64,000 nucleotides of DNA from Oikopleura dioica (GCA_907165135.1 OU015566.1:5208001-5272000), one strand, 5' to 3'. Counted from the stretch's first letter, positions 1 to 10,796 are shown. Notes: generated by a model not told the origin, from the letters alone. Numbers and translations: made by a program.

Positions 1-3000
1 TTCGAGGTCTTCCACTAGACTAACGCCTCCAGTTAGAAGAAAGCGGTATCCAGGCTCGTCCAATCTTCCCGCTTGTTTCATCAGCGCCGTCGTCAGCGTG
101 AACGAGAATAAGAACTTGTCTTTTTCGAATAAAGAGCGGCAAATGTTTCTGTACAATCCCAGAGTAAAGTGATCGTTTAACTGGCAACTTCGCTTGGAAA
201 TATCCACTGTTTTCGCGTCGTAACCAGGCGCTCTCGATTTGACGATACTTTTCAGAAAAAGGTTAACAAACCATGTCAGACTGTATTGATACATTGGCTC
301 GATGGCAGCCAAATCCTGGACGCAGAAGAAAAGAACAGACGCGTGAATCGCTGTTGGCAGATATTCTGCTCGTGTCTGATCAATCTTCGCTTCCGTTAAT
401 GTTGCTTCCTTCTGCTTCGCTTGAATTTCTTCAGAAAGCGTCTTTGAGGAGCTCAGGATTTTAATCGCCGTCTCGTCTTCCAAAATATTTCCGTCCGACG
501 AAAGCACCTCCAAAATTTTGTCCTCGATTTCTTTTAATTTGTTTTTATTTTGAGCGCCTTCTACGATGAGTTTACTCTTCACTTCTGCCAAGTCCGGACG
601 CTCCTCTCCCGTCACAATTCCAAGAAGCTGGTCTGTGAGTCCATCGGGCGTGATCATGAAGTTCAAAATGCAAACTTTCACGGAAACCTCGGGCAAGTAG
701 TGAGGATTCCGGAGAACAGTCGTCAGATACAGTCGGAAATCTTTGTTCCACTCGATTGTCGAGTCTCCAAGTTTGATGCATTCGACTCCCTGCGACTTAA
801 AAGTCTGTTTCAATAAGACTGGTTCCAAAACCGAGTCAAGCTCTTCGCCAACATTTTCCAAGAGCATTGGCTGGCCGAATTGGATCGCAGTTTCGAGAGT
901 TCTCAAGTAATTCGGATTCGACATTTTCAGAACATGAAGCCCCTTCTCCATGTTTTTCACCCACTTGTTAGCTTGTCCTTGCGGATCAATCATAAGCGGC
1001 CAACGACGACTGGAGCTTTGGATGATCGCATTGTCTGTCGAGTACGCGTCAGCAGGGAGGCCGGCCAATCGCCAGTTGCGGATTTTAACTGGATCTCCGA
1101 GAATATCAGAAAGCGAAAAAACTGGGTTGTGTTCGATACCGACACTTTTCATTGCAACCATCCAGTTGTCGATCGCTTTTCTTCTAAAATCTGAAGTAAA
1201 GGGGCCGACATAAGCAGAATAGGCAGAAGCAAGAAGGACGTCGCCAGTGAGTCTTTCTAGCTGCTCTGTGAGTTCTTCCGCTCTCTTTTTCCAAGCTGCC
1301 TTTTCTCCGCCTAAGCCGGAAAGAAGTTTTTCCGCTCGATCAAGCTTCAATTCGCACATGTTGATGTCCTCTTCAAGCTCTCTTTTCTTCTGCTTCTTTT
1401 CCTCCAGTTCGTTCTCCATGGCTGTCAGTTTGTCGACGACCTCTTTCAACTCTGCCTGTTTGATCTTCAAAGTATCCATCTGAACCTTCAAATCATCTTC
1501 TGCCTGTTTGAGTGCGATCTTCTTTGGCGCCACGACTTTAGCTACTCTCTCGTAGACTTCCATTGCGATAATCCATTTGACCATTCCTTCACATGCGGTC
1601 GACACTTTTGCCACTGTCTCGGGCTTGAAGTCGTCCATCGGAATGTATTTCTCGCGGATCTTTTTAATGATCGCAGGAGGAATGTTGTCTTTGTCGTAGT
1701 TTTTGAGTGAGTCAAGGAATTTCACGTCTCCGACCATTTTCTGCGAGGGTCCCCAAAAGTCGTCCATCATTTTTCCATCGGGGCCTGGTTTTCGCTCTGA
1801 CTTGACGCCCTTCATCACGCAAACAGCCTCCAAAACAAGTCTGACCAGTGTCGGTGGGTTTTTGAATGACTTCAAGTTGGTTATATCGGCTGGCTTGAGC
1901 GTGTTCAGCGCGGAAATGGCCGATTTAAGTGCTGGCATTGCCACTGCCAGCTCAGCCTCGCAATCGTCTTTGATGGCTTTCGCCGCTGTGGCTGCTTCGT
2001 TTGCGATTGCCTCATCCGCTTGCACGAGCTCTTTTTTGGCGTCAACATCCACTTTGTCAACTTCTATTTTTTCCATGATTCTGACCGTCTCTTTTGAGGT
2101 TGCCTCAAGGACCGGCTGTTTCGCGATAATCTCTTCTTTCATAACATCAACTTGGGCTGCCGCAAAAGCGAGTTTTTCAAGACCTCCTAAATATCGCTCT
2201 TTAAGCTGCGTCACTGCAAGTCTTTTTTGCTGCAGAAGCTGTTTGAAAGTCATGATGAGCTCAAGATAATTAGTCGGAGTAAGATAGTTCTTTCGGCCTA
2301 GAATGGCAAAGAATTCTTCGGAAAGGTCACGAATGTTTTCGTGGAAATGTTTGCAGAGCTGAACACAACCTCGGTGTCCTGCATCCCCTAAGTCCAGCTC
2401 TTCCAAGAAAGTGTTGGCAACCATTTCCAAAGCATCTTCTGGCCAAGGATGAAACCAGTCGATTGTGCAACAAGAAATGAAACTGGGAAAACTGCGAAGA
2501 CGATTACGTAGAGCGTCGCCAATCGGCGAAAAAGTCAGGATAACGTGAAGATTACTTTTGACTCGCTCAACAAAGTAACCATACAGAGCGAGTGGTGTTG
2601 AATCTATCTTTCTGCCTGTTGCCTTCGCCGCAGCAGTCATCTTTTCTAAAATCTCTGCTTTTTCGTCTGGCGCAAAGAGATTCGGAATGTCTCCAGAATT
2701 AAGCAAGGAAGAAATATCTTCTAAGCAAGCCTCATCTTTCACTTGTTGATCGCCGAAAATGAATGTCGTAGGTTTGCCATCTGCTCCTGCTTTCATTAAA
2801 AGCCGTTTCATGTCATCCTTCCAGTCGTTCATGCTGTAAGAACGAGTAATCTCGAGGTGGAAGGGTTCAAAATCCTTCATGAAGGTGGCGAGTTTTGCAG
2901 CAGAGTTTCGCCCTGAGCCACCAACTCCGATGAGGAGAGCATGCCGCCTGGCTGCGCTAAAACTCGGCAGACTCTAGAAATATGCTCGATCGCGAAACGA

Positions 3001-6000
3001 AACATGACCAGCGACATAGGTGCGGTGGAAATTTGATTGTATTCCTCAAGGAAGCCCTCGACTGTCGTTTTGAGAGTTGTCATGTCGGAAATCTCGTTGT
3101 AGACCTTGGACTCGCCAGCAAAGTCTCCGAAGAAAAGTGAGCGCACGTGATCTGGCTCCAAAGAGGCGGAATTAGCCGAGAGATGCGAAAGAAGTTTTTC
3201 TAAAGGAACTTTGAATGCATCATTCGTTGCAGATTTGATGATTTCGAAGAATAATCTTTGATCATCGGCGTCCACCAGACGATCAGCGAACACCCGATTA
3301 CTTTCGTGAACCCAGAGACGGATAAATTTTTCTGGCGAGTCGAGCTGCGATGGTGGAGTTTGGAGACAACCGAGAGTTACCCTGCTAAAATCGCGGAGAT
3401 TGAAAATGTAATGAGATTTAGTTGGAGTTGGCAAAAACGTCTTGGTTGCTTGAGTGAAGAGATTTAAAGTTGCTTGGACAGCCTGGAGACCAATTCGCTG
3501 GAAAGAAGCATCGTAGTTGTTGCGTTTCATGTGGATTGACGTGATAGTGGAGAAAATGTGACTCATGGCTTCATCGGATAGCTCAGGGAGAGAGATAATG
3601 TTCATGTGGCGAGCCATCCTGTCATCTACGGTGTTTCCACTGGATGGTGGGCCCATCGCTGCCAAGAATTGAACATCTTGCAGCTGGAATTTGGTCATAT
3701 CTTTCAGATCGTAGAAAAAGTCCAAGTCAAGCCATGTTCTCAGCAGCTCAATCGGTCCTTTTGCACCGTATGTTTCCTTTTGAGGCAAACTCAAGTCATC
3801 GACAAAGACAAGGCATCGTTTTCCAACTGGAGGTCCGTAAATTCCTTTCCGCCTCCGGTCCATTTTCACCATAATTGCATCTTGAGTTTGGTGTGCTGTT
3901 GTTCTCGCCGAGAAATTGACAATTAGTGGCAAGTATCCAACTGAACCTTCTGTCTTCGATGCTTTCATCAACCAGGTTTGAGTAAGAGCGGTTTTGCCTG
4001 TTCCTGTCGGGCCAACAAAAAGTAGTGGCAACTGTCGACCTTGGACGAGTGTATTTAAGAAATAGTTTTGCTGTACCGTGGTTGCATTTGGAATGATCAT
4101 TTCTCTTGCGGAGATAGAAGCAGGGAACTCCACGGCTTCAATAAGATTCCTCCAACTCTCCCACTGCCCGTTTGCTTTTTTCAGGAAGCAATAATCGTGA
4201 ACCAGTCCTTTTTCTGGAATAGCAACAAGTTTGTTCATTTTGATTGTCTTTGGCCGAGGGTGCTCGTCCTTCATTCCAGAGAGGAGCGGACGCAAGAAAC
4301 GGTTGAATTGTTCTCTGCCTTCTTCGCTCAATGTTGCTCCAAATGACCAGATCAGTGAAAATTGAAATAAACCAATGAGCCAGTTGGATGCCTGAACAAG
4401 GCTAAGCTCGTCTCCCGATCTCCATTCATCCAGATTCGCATCAAATAATTTCAAAAACGCGCTTGTCATGTGCTGGCCACCGGATGACATCATAAATTTC
4501 TGCTTTCCCAAGAACTCTAAGCAAGGCGTAAAGAGCCAGTTAAACATGTCCATCAACATTTCTTTCTCCGACTCTTGAATTCCACTTGGCAATGTGCTCA
4601 TAAAACACTTGACGAGTGGTTTCCAGCCGAGCTGATAAGGTTCAAGATATATCATTCCACAACGAGATACAGTGGCAGGTGAGGCCTGCTCCAGATCCGC
4701 CGGTTCGAAAATCATGCTCATAGTTGAGCCCATCTGAATTATCTCTCCCGACATTAGACAGAGTTTTTTGTTGTCATCAAGGACAGTGTTCATGTTTTCA
4801 ATCCAAACAGCATCTACTGGTCCGTCGAAGATCAACCACTGCCGCGCGTTTTTTGTGCCACAGAGATTCGCTTGCTCTCGGTAATTTATTGCCAGGACAC
4901 CGTCTGACCACTCATGGGAAACGGGATCGAAAGAACCATAAAGCTGGTTCATTGTAATTGACTTCGGATTGATGACTCTGTACTCGATCGGTAGAATTTC
5001 CTCGCTGTCTTCAGACATGATTGTAAGCGCTTCGGCAAGGCAAGAATAGTTGACTGTTTTGCCTCCCATGGTAGCACCGACGATCATAAAACCATGCCGA
5101 ACAATCATCATTTCGTAAATTTGCTGGATTTTAGTTTTCACCCAGTCCGTGGGATCAAGATTACGTGCTCTCATTACTTTTTCAATAGTTGCGTTGAGCG
5201 TTATGTAATCGGGCTGCGGAAGCTCTGTTCCTGGGAATAGATCGGAAACGATTCCATTGAACAGTGGAACGTCTTGAGCCAAGAACTTGGGCAAGTTGAC
5301 ATCAATAATTGCCCTAAGCATAAGAATACTCTCATCTTCCTCTGGCTGTTGAAGTTTAAGATTTCCAGCTGCTGTTAAAACCGATTTTACAGCTCGCATA
5401 CCGTAATCGTAGTGGTGCTGGGAGGACAGCTGTTCCGAGCAGAGTTTGTAAGTAGCCACGATTTTCTGAGCAAGAGATCTTGAGTTTCCAAATCCCATCG
5501 AATAGAGGGAAATTTCACCGATCATTCCGTAATCTGGAACCATCATCGCAACTGGTCTAAACAGAACCTTGAGGTTATCTGGCAGTTCAGAGCGGCCAGC
5601 ATATCCCGGATTCATTGTTATGAAAACAGCGCATTGCGCATTCAAGTTCAAATCGGTTCCCTCAAAATTAAACCTCGTCTTTCCTTCGCCTACTGCTTTC
5701 TGAATGCAAAGAATCTGCTGCGCCACGACCGAAAGCACTTCTATTTCAATTCGGTTGAACTCGTCAAAACAGGCCCAAGCCCCACAAGCAGCCAAGCCTT
5801 TGAAAAACTTTCCCATTGCCTTGTAGTCCAGCCCATCCGAGCAGTTAAAAACGACGCACTGCTTTGCTAATGCTTTTGCTAGATCTTTTGTTGTTTCAGT
5901 TTTACCAGTTCCGGCTGGTCCCTCAGGAGCACCTCCCAAATTGAGTTTGAGAGCTCCCATCAGTGTTCGATAGCATCTGTCTGTGAGTGGTGTAATGACC

Positions 6001-9000
6001 AGTCGTGGTGAATTTCCGAGGTATTCGTAGCCATAGGGATACTCGGTGTTAATCAAGTGGACGTAAACTTCGTCTTGTTCGCCATCCTTGTTGATGTAGT
6101 AGCGAACTTGTTTCAACCAGTCGAAATCATTCACATTGGAGATATTTTCCTCAGCAAGCTCTTTGATCACGTCTCTTGCATGAACGTCCAATACTGTCAA
6201 AGCAGAGAGGGAAGTTCTTATACCGGTCGGAAGTTTACTGCGAACGAGTAAAACTATATCGCCGATTTGATCTGTTAGTTTCTGACAATACGTCTTCAGT
6301 GATCCGTTTTTGATTGCTTCTTCGGCCTCCGACGTCCAGAAAACTTGAGATCCAGAAAGAACGACTTGTCCAGGCCACTTTTGAACCCACTCCGCTCGTT
6401 TCGTAAAAGCATAATCATCCGTCCCAGCAAGACTTACTCGACGGATATTTTTCAACATAGACTCTTCGACCTGTAGAAGCCACTTTTCGACCATTCCTCT
6501 TGCTAGAGCTGGGTCTATCTTCTCATCAAAGGGAACCTCTTCTTTCTCGCTCGAGATCATGGCGAGTATTTCTAGTTTCGCATTAAAATTGAGCTTGGCG
6601 ATACCTTCAAAGCACTTTTTCAGGTGCGGCTGAACTCGAGTTGGGTCTTTCGTCTCCGAAAGAATTTCCAAAAGCTCATCATTGGAAAGAAAGAAAAATC
6701 GATTGAAGAAGAGACGTTTTTCTTCGAGATAATCATTGAGACCCTTTTGAATGAGCTCAAGTAGTTCTAAAGCTTCCCGAAGTCGACCAAGCAATCCAGG
6801 TTGATCAGTGGCAACTAAAACAGAAGGATCCTCTGCCGTTGCTGCCATGCACTCTTTCCAAGTTCCATCGACAATAGTAAAGCGACGTCCTTCTTCCGGC
6901 ATTTGAGCCATTATATCTTCGGAACTAAAAATCGGCTCCAGATAGAGCCACGCAGCTTGTACTTTAAGCCAAACATCGAGGACATCTTGCATGAGTATAA
7001 GTTTGTCGTCCCACGCCTAAATAATTTTCAGTATCATCGTCGATTATAAACCGCGATTGGCATTTCTGAGGTCTTTCAACAACAACAGTGTATATTTATC
7101 TTCATTTTGTATTTTTGTGATTTTTTAGGAAAATCATGCATTTTGTGGTTTGTTGTGCTGATTCATAATTAGTTTAAAAGTGCTCTTTTTTTAATTTCTG
7201 ATTTGTGCGTTGTTTAAATACCTGGAAACTTTTCTCGAAATACTTGAGATAGACTGAGCCTCTCATTGTCATCGCTTTCAGAATATGATCATCCAAAAGA
7301 ATGAAAATATCATCGAGCGACGAGAGAATAGAAACGTCCTAAATGAGAATGTTAACGAACCTTGAAATCTTCCGCAAACGCTCCTAAATAAGGAGAAGAT
7401 CGTAAAGCTTGACACTTGATGAGCTGGTCGTCCAGAAGAATCTGGATTTCATCCATACCTCCGAAAATACTTACGCTCTTAATTCCGTATAAATGTTTAA
7501 TAAAAGTAAAAGAAATTGAAAAAAGCAAGTCATTACCGTGTCACGATAAGGCAAAAGCGTGAATTTCATCTCCTGCCAGTCTTCCTTCATCTTATTCAGG
7601 GTTTTCTCCAGAGCATATTCCTTGGCAGCAGAGACAGCGATCTCTTCGAGCTTCGGTAAGTGCTGCCCAAGATTGAATTCAAGCATTTGTAAAAGAGTTG
7701 TGTCTTCGTCGGGGCGAATGTCAGTTCCTACAACGACTTCGACGCGGTCCCAGTGCCGCGGCCGCATTCCATTTGCTCCAAGAGCTTGAATGATCGGCAA
7801 ATCGCGCTTGAACTTGTCGATCTTTGTTCGAACAGTATCTGCCATTCTTCGTGGAGCGGGAGTGTCTGAAAATACTTTCGAAAGCTTGAAAAGAAGCCTC
7901 CACATGTTGCTGATGTCCTCGGCCATCTCTTCGACTTGTAATTTTCGAAATGTTCCATTAAGCCAGTTTTCGCTTTTGATATTCCAGTCATTTACTGTTT
8001 CCCAAAGTTGCTGGAATGGATGCATTTCCCGAATTCCATCTGGGTGTGCCTCAAAAACAGACTCTTCTCGCTCCAATAGCCGCTCTTCAAAGTTCAAATG
8101 TTCAATTCGTTCGCCTACTCTATCCAAATCGACCCTCAACGTAGACAAAACCTCTACAAATCGTTTTGTTTCCTCACTCGAATTCGTCTCCTCCATGTTG
8201 AATTTTTCGATCGCTTTGGATATTCGCTCAAGCTCAACTTCGATCTCTTTCGATTTTTTACGGACTGTGTTTTCCGCTGCCACTTTTTTCACAGCGAATT
8301 TTTCTTCGTTAAAATCGAGCACATTTCGCAAATGCTCGGGCTGTGAAAGCACGTTGTAGTTGATTCGGTAGTCTTCGTCTTCTAATGTTGCGAACTCGAT
8401 CAGGAATCCGAGGCGAATCCCCGCTTTTTGAACGCGGGCTGAAAGAGCATCTTTTTTACTTTTGACGACTTCGCGCAAGTAATTCATCGTGTTCACAAGT
8501 TGCTCGGTGTCTTCCGGCTCTCGGGCTAGTTTACGCCCGATTTCTTCGTACTCGCGATTGATTTGCCGATTCAATTGGCGGTTTTTCTGCACTTGATCTT
8601 CTACGATTCGATTTTCAAGGTCTTTAACGAGCTCTACAAGCTCAGAATTGATCTGCGTGCAATCAAGGAAGAAAATTCCAAGTTGACAATTCGGATAGAG
8701 CCCATTTATTTGATTTAAAACAGCTCTCAGTTTCATTATTCTGGCGGCGATGTCTTCACACTCTCTGTCACTCGACTCGAAAATAAAAGTACTCACTGCT
8801 TCCAATTCACTCCCTGAAAGAATAGAATCAAAGGGAGAGTACACTTCCAAAAACGTTTCCGCATTCGGAACATGCTGGCTGACGACGTAATCAGCTCTTG
8901 CGAGAAGAGAGACAACCCAATCTTCTGAGGGCAAAACTGGGAATAGATTCTGCGTCTGCAACTGATCAATGTGCTCAGGAAACAGCAAAAGCTCTAGTCT

Positions 9001-10796
9001 GTTGAGCCCGCTGCCAGATTCGATGATGTACTCGAAGCATGTTCCGAGCATTTCTTTTGTTGTCTCGAGACTCGGCGAGAAAGCAGGCTGGGGAGAGTCG
9101 TTTGCCACAAGTTTCAGATTCAAAACTGGCTTTTTCTGAATGTATTCCAAAAGATCATAGTTATGCGCCTTTTTTAAAACGGCGGGGTCTTTATGCACTT
9201 CGATGAATTCGACGATGCGAGTGAGTGAGTCTTTTACAAGCTGGCGAACTTGAGATGACATTAACGCTGCAACGCAATTGAATAGCTCCATTATATCTCT
9301 CACGGCGTCGGGATCATTTCTTTTGAGTAAATTAACGTTGTATCGCTTTTGGCTGCTCTGAAAATGATCTTCCAGGATTTCCGCAGCTTTTGGAAGCCAC
9401 TGCGTCACCAGAACATCTCTCACTTCATCACTCCGATTATTTACAGCTTGAATAAACTCTTGTGGGCTTTTGTGGCCGTCAAATGTCTCCTCGTCGCCGA
9501 GAAAAATAGCTGTGAGCGAAATTGAACATCCCAAAGTTTTGTTAGCTCGTAAATAGGAGCAGACGTTGTGTGCAGATGTTTTTCGCAGAAATTTTTTGAA
9601 GACAAGAACTCATCATGCCAAGGAACTGGTGCTCTGATTGTATTGAGCTTGGGCGACTCGTGGGGAATCTCAATTTTCAGCCGCTTTTGCTCGTATGGAT
9701 CAAAATTGGGCTCGGCAACCTGCGTAGAAAACCTGAGTCAGGTATCTGAAAGAATTTTCATAATAGACTCCCATGGACTAAAATTCTTGTAGCGGGTAAG
9801 CCGCATTTGCTTTACTAACGCGGCTTTTATGAAAACTTTTTCAGAGCCCTGTCTTCTGTTTTCCGCGCAGATAGCCGAGCCCAAGATCCAAGAGAATAAA
9901 GTCAAGAATTGACTGTTTTGTCGCGTCCAGATACTCTTCCATGATTTCATTTCTTAATTCTTTTTCTACCCATTCATAGCGCCCGCGAAGATTCGATTTC
10001 TCCAAAATAGTTTGGAACGATTTCTCATGCAAAGGTTCAAGATCGTTTGTTGGAATCTTCCGCTTCAGAACTTTCATTCGTTCCAAATCAGAACTTGTGG
10101 AGTCAAGAAACCGAGCAGGAGCCTTTCGCCGCTGCTCCATTGGTGACATTGGTCTTGAAGGTGGCGCCTCCGGTCGTGCTTCATACTCTTCGTTTAGTTT
10201 CTTGTGCGACAAAGTGCTCACTTTTGGATCTGGACGATGTTTTATTGCTCGAACTTTGAGATCGCGCGCTTTCGGACAGTAATTATTTCCAATCCGGTCG
10301 GAGTGATGGCGACTTTTCCAGCCCTCTTTGAATGGCTTTACTGTGATAATTATTTTTAAGGGAATGGAAGTGTTAGTTTTATCAGATAAATGACTGCTTA
10401 TCAAAAAAACTCAGTTAATGTTCGAAGATTAAATTTTCTTCTTTTAGAAACAAAAATAAACTGGCTTCTATCCAAAATCTTCGAGATTCGCCGCGATTGT
10501 TATTGAAAAACTGGCGATAAATCGACAATAGCGAAAAATAAAGAGGAAAAATGAAAATATCGGGGATTATCTTCCTCTTTTCCTCTGTTTTCACGAAAAA
10601 CTCCAATTCGCACCTTCCGGACCTTTTCATTAGTTGACGGATAAGAAATATCATATAACCAAAGATATATTCAATTCTCACATTCCTGAAGCTTTGCCGT
10701 GGAAAACTCATTGATCACAGGCTCGTAATTAGGAGCTCGATACTGGGTCTTCCTTGGGTAGCGATAGTCGTCATGACCGTCTGATGCCTTTCTCAT
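1..10796 (-). CDS. DNAH3: Axonemal inner-arm dynein heavy chain, DNAH3-like (DNAH3/7/12 group); 3' end lies beyond the window start. Exons ~10796-10683, 10342-~9885, ~9705-7539, alternative exons 7477-7361 / 7338-7222, then 7016-1
   Basis: AAA1 P-loop [47 protein letters not shown]; AAA3 GPTGTGKT; stalk/MTBD ([15 protein letters not shown]); [14 protein letters not shown]. Apparent 1-nt deletions at ~2944 and ~9503. Paralog choice rests on recalled similarity and is less certain than the family call. Confidence 0.9.
7222..7338 (-). other. Dynein alternative exon B (117 nt, phase 0/0): [39 protein letters not shown]
   Basis: catttag| acceptor and CAG|gtattt donor; same length and phase as exon A, 22 nt away from it. 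Confidence 0.85.
7361..7477 (-). other. Dynein alternative exon A (117 nt, phase 0/0): [39 protein letters not shown]
   Basis: aattaag| acceptor and AAG|gttcg donor; open frame homologous to exon B and to the dynein segment after YRDT. Confidence 0.8.
9706..9884. mobile_element. hAT-type MITE family 1 (TIR NNGGGCTCGGCAACCTG) interrupting dynein coding sequence
   Basis: Ends TTGGGCTCGGCAACCTG ... CAGATAGCCGAGCCCAA; 8-bp flanks GATCAAAA/GATCCAAG (6/8 identical); the protein reads ILLD before and PYEQKRL after it. Confidence 0.8.
10396..10630. repeat. ~235-bp interspersed repeat in dynein intron 1; a second copy at 18146-18167 + 18722-18935 is split by a piggyBac-like MITE
   Basis: Near-identical sequence (cttatcaaaaaaactcagttaatgttcgaagattaa...ccggaccttttcat) at both sites. 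Confidence 0.85.

Follow-up and report, generated by a model that had tools for sequence, protein, structure and literature searches.

In a dynein heavy chain gene of Oikopleura dioica, two neighboring 117-nt exons very probably form an ancient mutually exclusive pair, with one exon used per mRNA and two versions of the motor's linker encoded. The exclusivity is most likely enforced by steric interference across the 22 nt that separate the two exons. We set out below the sequence, annotation, comparative and structural evidence for this reading, together with the alternatives to it.

Two homologous exons of equal length in a dynein heavy chain gene

The window (the whole 64,000-nucleotide stretch of O. 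dioica DNA analyzed here, to which all coordinates refer) carries the gene on its minus strand. Two 39-codon exons, which we call A and B, lie there in tandem, each of 117 nt, in phase 0/0 and open in frame, with AG before and GT after. The first-pass annotation had described two homologous phase 0/0 exons of this length with AG/GT sites, 22 nt apart, and both our reading of the sequence and the alignment bore this out. Aligned without gaps, the two exons are identical at 57 of 117 nucleotides and at 17 of 39 amino acids (44% at the protein level). When the whole 64.3-Mb genome was searched in six frames, exon A and exon B matched each other reciprocally (E of ∼7e-4), and their resemblance is thus not due to chance. 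The pair is a genuine and old tandem duplication of one 117-nt exon, the copies of which have since diverged.

Upstream of the pair, the constitutive exon (7537..9357, minus strand, as are all of the following features) ends in ..PYRDT and encodes the tail and the first part of the DHC_N2 linker domain; the public protein P0003 could be traced exactly along it. An intron of 59 nt (7478..7536, gtaatg..attaag) leads to exon A (7361..7477), the derived copy, which has KCQAL as its hallmark and gttcgt as its donor. The spacer that follows (7339..7360) has 22 nt, gttcgttaacattctcatttag, starting with the exon A donor gttcgt and ending with the exon B acceptor tttag, and contains a branch-site-like ttaac 13 nt from its end. 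Exon B (7222..7338, donor gtattt) is nearer to the ancestral family sequence. Beyond it lie an intron of 205 nt (7017..7221, gtattt..atttag) and the downstream constitutive exon (2880..7016), which starts with AWDDKL.. and, according to the public model, encodes the rest of the linker, AAA1 and AAA2. Contrary to that model, the coding sequence continues in another frame up to the start of the window. In the isoform with B, the 59-nt intron is part of a 198-nt intron (7536-7339), and in the isoform with A the 205-nt intron is part of one of 344 nt (7360-7017). Of the junction coordinates proposed earlier, those at the ends of exons A and B and of the downstream exon proved correct, and the end of the upstream exon had to be moved from 7539 to 7537; the mended upstream joints are 7537>7477 and 7537>7338.

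Assignment of the gene to the DNAH3-type inner-arm dyneins

The best PDB matches of the upstream exon are DNAH3 chains, followed by DNAH7 and DNAH12. For the downstream exon, the top match is the organism's own public protein, OKI2018_I69 chr1.g1402, followed by vertebrate DNAH3 with ∼60% identity. In a tree built from the 400 residues that follow the segment, the gene is placed beside DNAH3 sequences from vertebrates and sponges; the branch that separates this side from the DNAH7 and DNAH12 sequences has 100/99 support. An O. dioica paralogue on C5 is placed with DNAH7. By this placement, we assign the gene as the O. dioica orthologue of DNAH3, a single-headed inner-arm dynein heavy chain. 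The human DNAH3 protein forms the heavy chain of inner dynein arm c (IDA-c) (PMC10266980), and human DNAH7 is used in two arms, b and e (Walton et al. 2023, PMC10266980). Two chains of PDB entry 9fqr are dynein heavy chains by sequence: chain Xx (4069 aa), labelled "putative malate dehydrogenase 1B," is DNAH3-like, and chain Hl (4583 aa), labelled "Radial spoke head protein 9 homolog," is DNAH10-like, so that both names are misassigned in the PDB copy used.

Both DHC_N2 and AAA1 were found in the gene; its later parts could be aligned up to the start of the window, and the last part lies outside it. The DHC_N2 match is complete for both isoforms (480.7 and 479.9 bits). With ∼15 loci across the genome that carry the linker domain, the dynein set shows no obvious reduction; own-genome searches of these ∼15 dynein heavy chain loci revealed no second exon pair. 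A recent copy from a paralogue was also considered as a source and was ruled out, the nearest paralogue segment sharing 61% identity with B and 47% with A.

Annotated isoforms each contain one of the two exons

In GenBank, gene g1402 has two proteins, t1 (CAG5104628.1) and t2 (CAG5104629.1), each of 2184 aa, which differ solely at residues 767-805. There t1 has exon B as its sole alternative exon and t2 has exon A; neither has both. The mutually exclusive use that had been predicted from the sequence is thus already found in the public annotation. When AUGUSTUS is guided by hints, alternative transcripts reflect conflicting hints. The OKI2018_I69 annotation was produced by AUGUSTUS, which was given intron hints from RNA-seq as well as transcript hints, and comprises 18,794 isoforms of 17,260 genes (PMC8008620), and from this description of its method we infer that t1 and t2 were backed by RNA-seq junction hints. 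Both isoforms have been deposited, though we found no paper that describes them: our literature search returned none on the A/B pair, on exclusive exons in axonemal dynein, or on such exons in Oikopleura dynein.

A look-up of sequencing runs listed no RNA run that contains this stretch, and RNA reads from three bulk runs and one single-cell run were searched against positions 6600-8000. No joints were found, and four partial reads matched with 90 to 95% identity. Three of these four fall on 7211-7304, within exon B, a stretch that is 91 to 94% identical to the sister lineage L001. Because the reads match where L001 is similar, the runs probably come from another O. dioica lineage. The best 80-nt window against L001 reaches 94% in exon B and 84% in exon A, which is below the 90% read cut-off, and the absence of reads on A is thus uninformative. 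In a further search with residues 690-900 of the public protein P0123, no O. dioica cDNA fragment was recognized as judged by percent identity, the matches having at most 64% except for P0220, with 75% over half of the query.

Age of the pair and selection on both exons in related lineages

Related loci were gathered from public assemblies and marine metagenomes by means of the flanking exons, A-type peptides and an A+B profile. Search queries were single exons or the public proteins P0003 and P0123; concatenated rows of flank plus segment were used for trees only. We take these loci to belong to other appendicularians. Loci with enough flanking sequence were included in the monophyly trees, where they form one clade with the window's gene, supported at 100/99 for six rows (400 residues after the segment) and at 100/98 for ten rows (199 columns, A segment included).

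Orthologues had been named as the place to look for the exon pair, and the pair is indeed kept in at least seven related lineages, always as 117 plus 117 nt with AG/GT and with spacers of 20 to 41 nt. The spacer measures 20 nt in L001/L009, 24 nt in P0244, 25 nt in L014/L016/L019, 27 nt in L011, 36 nt in L002/L003, 38 nt in L010 and 41 nt in L018. When a profile was run against 1.84 billion representatives, one protein, P0244, had both copies; it is an 82-aa open reading frame in genomic DNA of an L011-like lineage from a public assembly and not a transcript. Because its 24-nt spacer is in frame and has no stops, a prokaryote-style gene caller translated both exons and the spacer between them as a single peptide; if the spacer were retained in a transcript of that lineage, the frame would stay intact.

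The A-type segments form one clade on a long stem (SH-aLRT of 99), and the B-types lie near the single-copy outgroups. This pattern argues that the duplication is older than these lineages and that A is the derived copy. In the outgroups L004 and L005, there is a single B-like copy, intronless at the site.

Compared with L001, exon A has a dN of 0.068 and a dS of 1.23 (dN/dS of 0.055), and exon B a dN of 0.022 and a dS of 0.81 (dN/dS of 0.027). Against L002, pN is 0.14 for A and B alike, with synonymous sites saturated. The flanking introns are only 41 to 59% identical, versus 82 to 88% for the exons. As judged from these substitution patterns, both A and B are under strong purifying selection.

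A alone is present at three related loci (L012, L013 and L017), which implies that B is dispensable in some lineages. At L012 (2150-2900), exon B and both flanking introns are gone and one continuous open frame remains. At L017 (395-665), both introns are kept and a 151-nt intron holds no exon B. At L013 (1358-1500), an insert of ∼140 nt, rich in acgtaat-like repeats, interrupts the A-type segment after ..LIKCQ and looks like a young intron or a transposon insertion at a new position. In the tree, L017 groups with L014/16 at 92/92 and L012 with L013 at 94/90, which suggests that B may have been lost twice independently; a single A-only clade was not rejected (AU test, p = 0.10).

The loss of B at these three loci, and the RNA reads that showed nothing on exon A, might be taken to mean that one of the exons is a dead or unused duplicate and that a single isoform is made. 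We regard this as highly improbable. In at least seven lineages, frame, length and AG/GT sites have been kept for both exons while the adjoining introns were scrambled, the dN/dS values are low (0.03 to 0.06) for both, both isoforms are present in an RNA-seq-guided annotation, and the missing reads on A are explained by the lineage divergence described above. The first-pass annotation had listed a dead duplicate as a finding that would overturn its reading, and the purifying selection on both exons, together with the retention of the pair, excludes it.

A single copy in other heavy chains and the structure of the segment

On solved heavy chains, as had been proposed, the segment could be mapped, and A and B match the same residues, namely, 927-962 of DNAH7 and ∼1029-1063 of DNAH3. 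The assumption that dynein heavy chains carry this segment once was likewise borne out: none of the 213 DNAH3/7/12-type relatives outside the clade has two copies, and each has one. Among these relatives, 194 are nearer to B and 8 nearer to A, and the KCQ motif of A occurs in none. The vertebrate DNAH3 sequences examined have one B-like copy each. A retains Q12, Q23 and P29 of the near-invariant family residues, and B retains L5, H18, T24, M25, G27, K32 and E35; the two copies have lost different ones.

AlphaFold models of residues 600-1010 have a pLDDT of 92.1 and 91.8, their secondary-structure strings are identical between the isoforms, and both match solved dynein linkers. The segment occupies model residues 168-206, comprising the second strand of a hairpin, a helix of 18 residues (176-193), and the first 11 residues of a long helix (196-236). 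In human cytoplasmic dynein 1, its counterpart is roughly residues 1484-1522, a stretch close to where motor-domain constructs have their N terminus. The tail-to-linker region to which the difference had been assigned on first reading can thus be specified as the N-terminal part of the linker. According to the models, A and B are predicted to encode the same linker element with the same fold.

The possibility has to be weighed that both exons are constitutive, the 22 nt being cut out as an ultra-short intron and the segment doubled in the protein. Both exons are multiples of three and in phase, so the frame would survive their co-inclusion; the spacer has GT..AG ends; and ultra-short introns do occur in a few animals (PMC13644364). 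Against this, neither public isoform contains both exons, and the segment is present in a single copy in all 213 relatives and, as A, at the three A-only loci inside the clade. Moreover, the segment is a strand plus a helix packed into a conserved fold. The intron lengths point the same way: the median intron of the O. dioica genome is 49 nt (PMC8008620), and among 51 animal genomes only those of myxobolids and Dicyema had introns of less than 30 nt (PMC13644364). A doubled segment therefore seems to us very unlikely, and the use of one exon per mRNA remains the preferred reading.

The short spacer and probable exclusive splicing

At 22 nt, the spacer is below the customary lower limit of ∼30 nt for animal introns, a figure which may not be that of Oikopleura. 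With this distance between the donor of A and the acceptor of B, and with the likely branch site 8 nt from the donor, the spliceosome would be unable to join A to B. The upstream exon would be joined either to A, with B then skipped, or to B, with A then removed together with the intron. Since both exons are multiples of three, nonsense-mediated decay would miss any co-inclusion. The short spacer would be what maintains exclusivity, and the gene would yield two motors with 22 residue differences between them in the mobile N-terminal part of the linker, probably adapted to different kinds of cilia or axonemal settings.

Spacers of 36, 38 and 41 nt, found in three lineages, are near a spliceable size; steric exclusion may therefore not operate everywhere, or the distance from donor to branch site may be what is limiting. 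These longer spacers, which approach normal intron size, and the generally short introns of Oikopleura lend some weight to the view that exclusivity is set by competing RNA structures or splicing factors and that the short spacer is a by-product of genome compaction. We consider this view unlikely overall, though it deserves more weight than the two alternatives discussed above. In L002 the flanking introns measure ∼565 and ∼295 nt and the spacer still has 36 nt, and the spacer is thus short even where compaction is relaxed. In most lineages a branch-site-like motif can be recognized by eye 12 to 16 nt ahead of the exon B acceptor, 8 to 28 nt from the donor, and the 59-nt upstream intron leaves little space for selector structures. 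Interference across the short spacer is accordingly the explanation that we favor.

State of the gene in the present assembly

The public model omits 612 nt (9969-9358) and thus is without 142 residues that are conserved in L001. Within the omitted stretch, a MITE lies at ∼9885-9705, inside coding sequence, after ..SILDFILLD, with the inverted ends cttgggctcggc .. gccgagcccaa. Further upstream (10336-10685, minus strand), the public model as traced needs a first intron of 350 nt that starts with GA and ends with AG. Non-canonical introns are known in O. dioica, and a GA..AG first intron would fit among them.

Two apparent frameshifts affect the gene on the minus strand. The first is in a T run at ∼9503-9507, after ..LFF in conserved coding sequence, with five T versus six in L001. 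The second, at ∼2950 (2940-2960), after ..AQPGG and just before the AAA3 P-loop, is one base short, and a second C at ∼2950 would restore the frame. Owing to this second frameshift, public model g1402 runs out of frame and stops at 2877-2879, with 2184 aa. The true frame is open from ∼2943 to the start of the window, with 77 to 80% aligned identity to the L002 orthologue. Both frameshifts are probably Nanopore assembly errors, the first of homopolymer type. If the frameshifts and the MITE were real, the gene would be damaged in the sequenced individual.

Possible significance and comparison with known systems

Axonemal dynein diversity is usually put down to paralogous genes. We suggest, as a tentative possibility, that the exon pair stands in for a gene duplication here, the derived A and the ancestral-like B giving two functionally distinct inner-arm dyneins. 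If this were true, one might serve sperm flagella and the other the ciliary rings or the cilia of the gut, or they might occupy two docking sites within the 96-nm repeat, and the 22 differing linker residues would alter linker swing or docking. To our knowledge, natural isoforms of the dynein linker, the motor's lever, are hardly known, and a natural pair of linker variants would be of use in studying how the dynein power stroke is tuned. A compact chordate genome has long kept two versions of a single linker element. A and B would provide a ready comparison for motor mechanics and for cell-type-specific cilia, and the pair would be a clean tunicate example of exclusive splicing by a short spacer.

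Human DNAH3 belongs to the same orthologous group as the O. dioica gene, and human DNAH7 shows that one heavy chain gene can serve more than one axonemal site (PMC10266980); unlike in O. dioica, no alternative exon at this segment of human DNAH3 is described in that study. Within the dyneins, a mutually exclusive exon was predicted in the cytoplasmic heavy chain DHC1 of Schistosoma mansoni (Pillmann et al. 2011, PMC3228551), a prediction cited again by Kollmar (2016, PMC5100056). Like the present pair, that one consists of two homologous exons of equal length in a heavy chain and was proposed because other heavy chains have one copy. In contrast, the O. dioica chain is an axonemal inner-arm chain, and its pair lies in the N-terminal part of the linker, in phase 0/0 and with a spacer of sub-minimal length.

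Muscle myosin heavy chain genes of insects and other invertebrates have several alternative exon clusters with long intervening introns, and tuning of the motor by them has been shown experimentally. The O. dioica gene resembles them in that one motor gene swaps homologous exons for mechanical elements instead of relying on paralogous genes. Unlike in the myosins, a dynein is concerned here, with one pair and a short spacer, known from sequence and annotation.

The closest parallel for the arrangement is found in Caenorhabditis elegans, where five exclusive clusters have intervening introns of 14 to 30 nt, all exons are multiples of three, and excision of the short introns was never observed (PMC4165533). 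These clusters are egl-15 5B/5A (14 nt), let-2 9/10 (30 nt), bet-2, gly-5 and gly-6 (Kuroyanagi et al. 2014, PMC4165533). Shared with O. dioica are homologous tandem exons of 3n length and an intron of sub-minimal size, double inclusion in O. dioica, too, being most likely physically barred and not policed by nonsense-mediated decay. The genes and the phylum are different, however, and the C. elegans cases were verified by RT-PCR whereas the present one is known only from public annotation; in addition, the spacer of the Oikopleura clade spans 20 to 41 nt over the lineages. Exclusive splicing by means of a short spacer was thus already known, and the axonemal dynein pair of O. dioica very probably adds another case.
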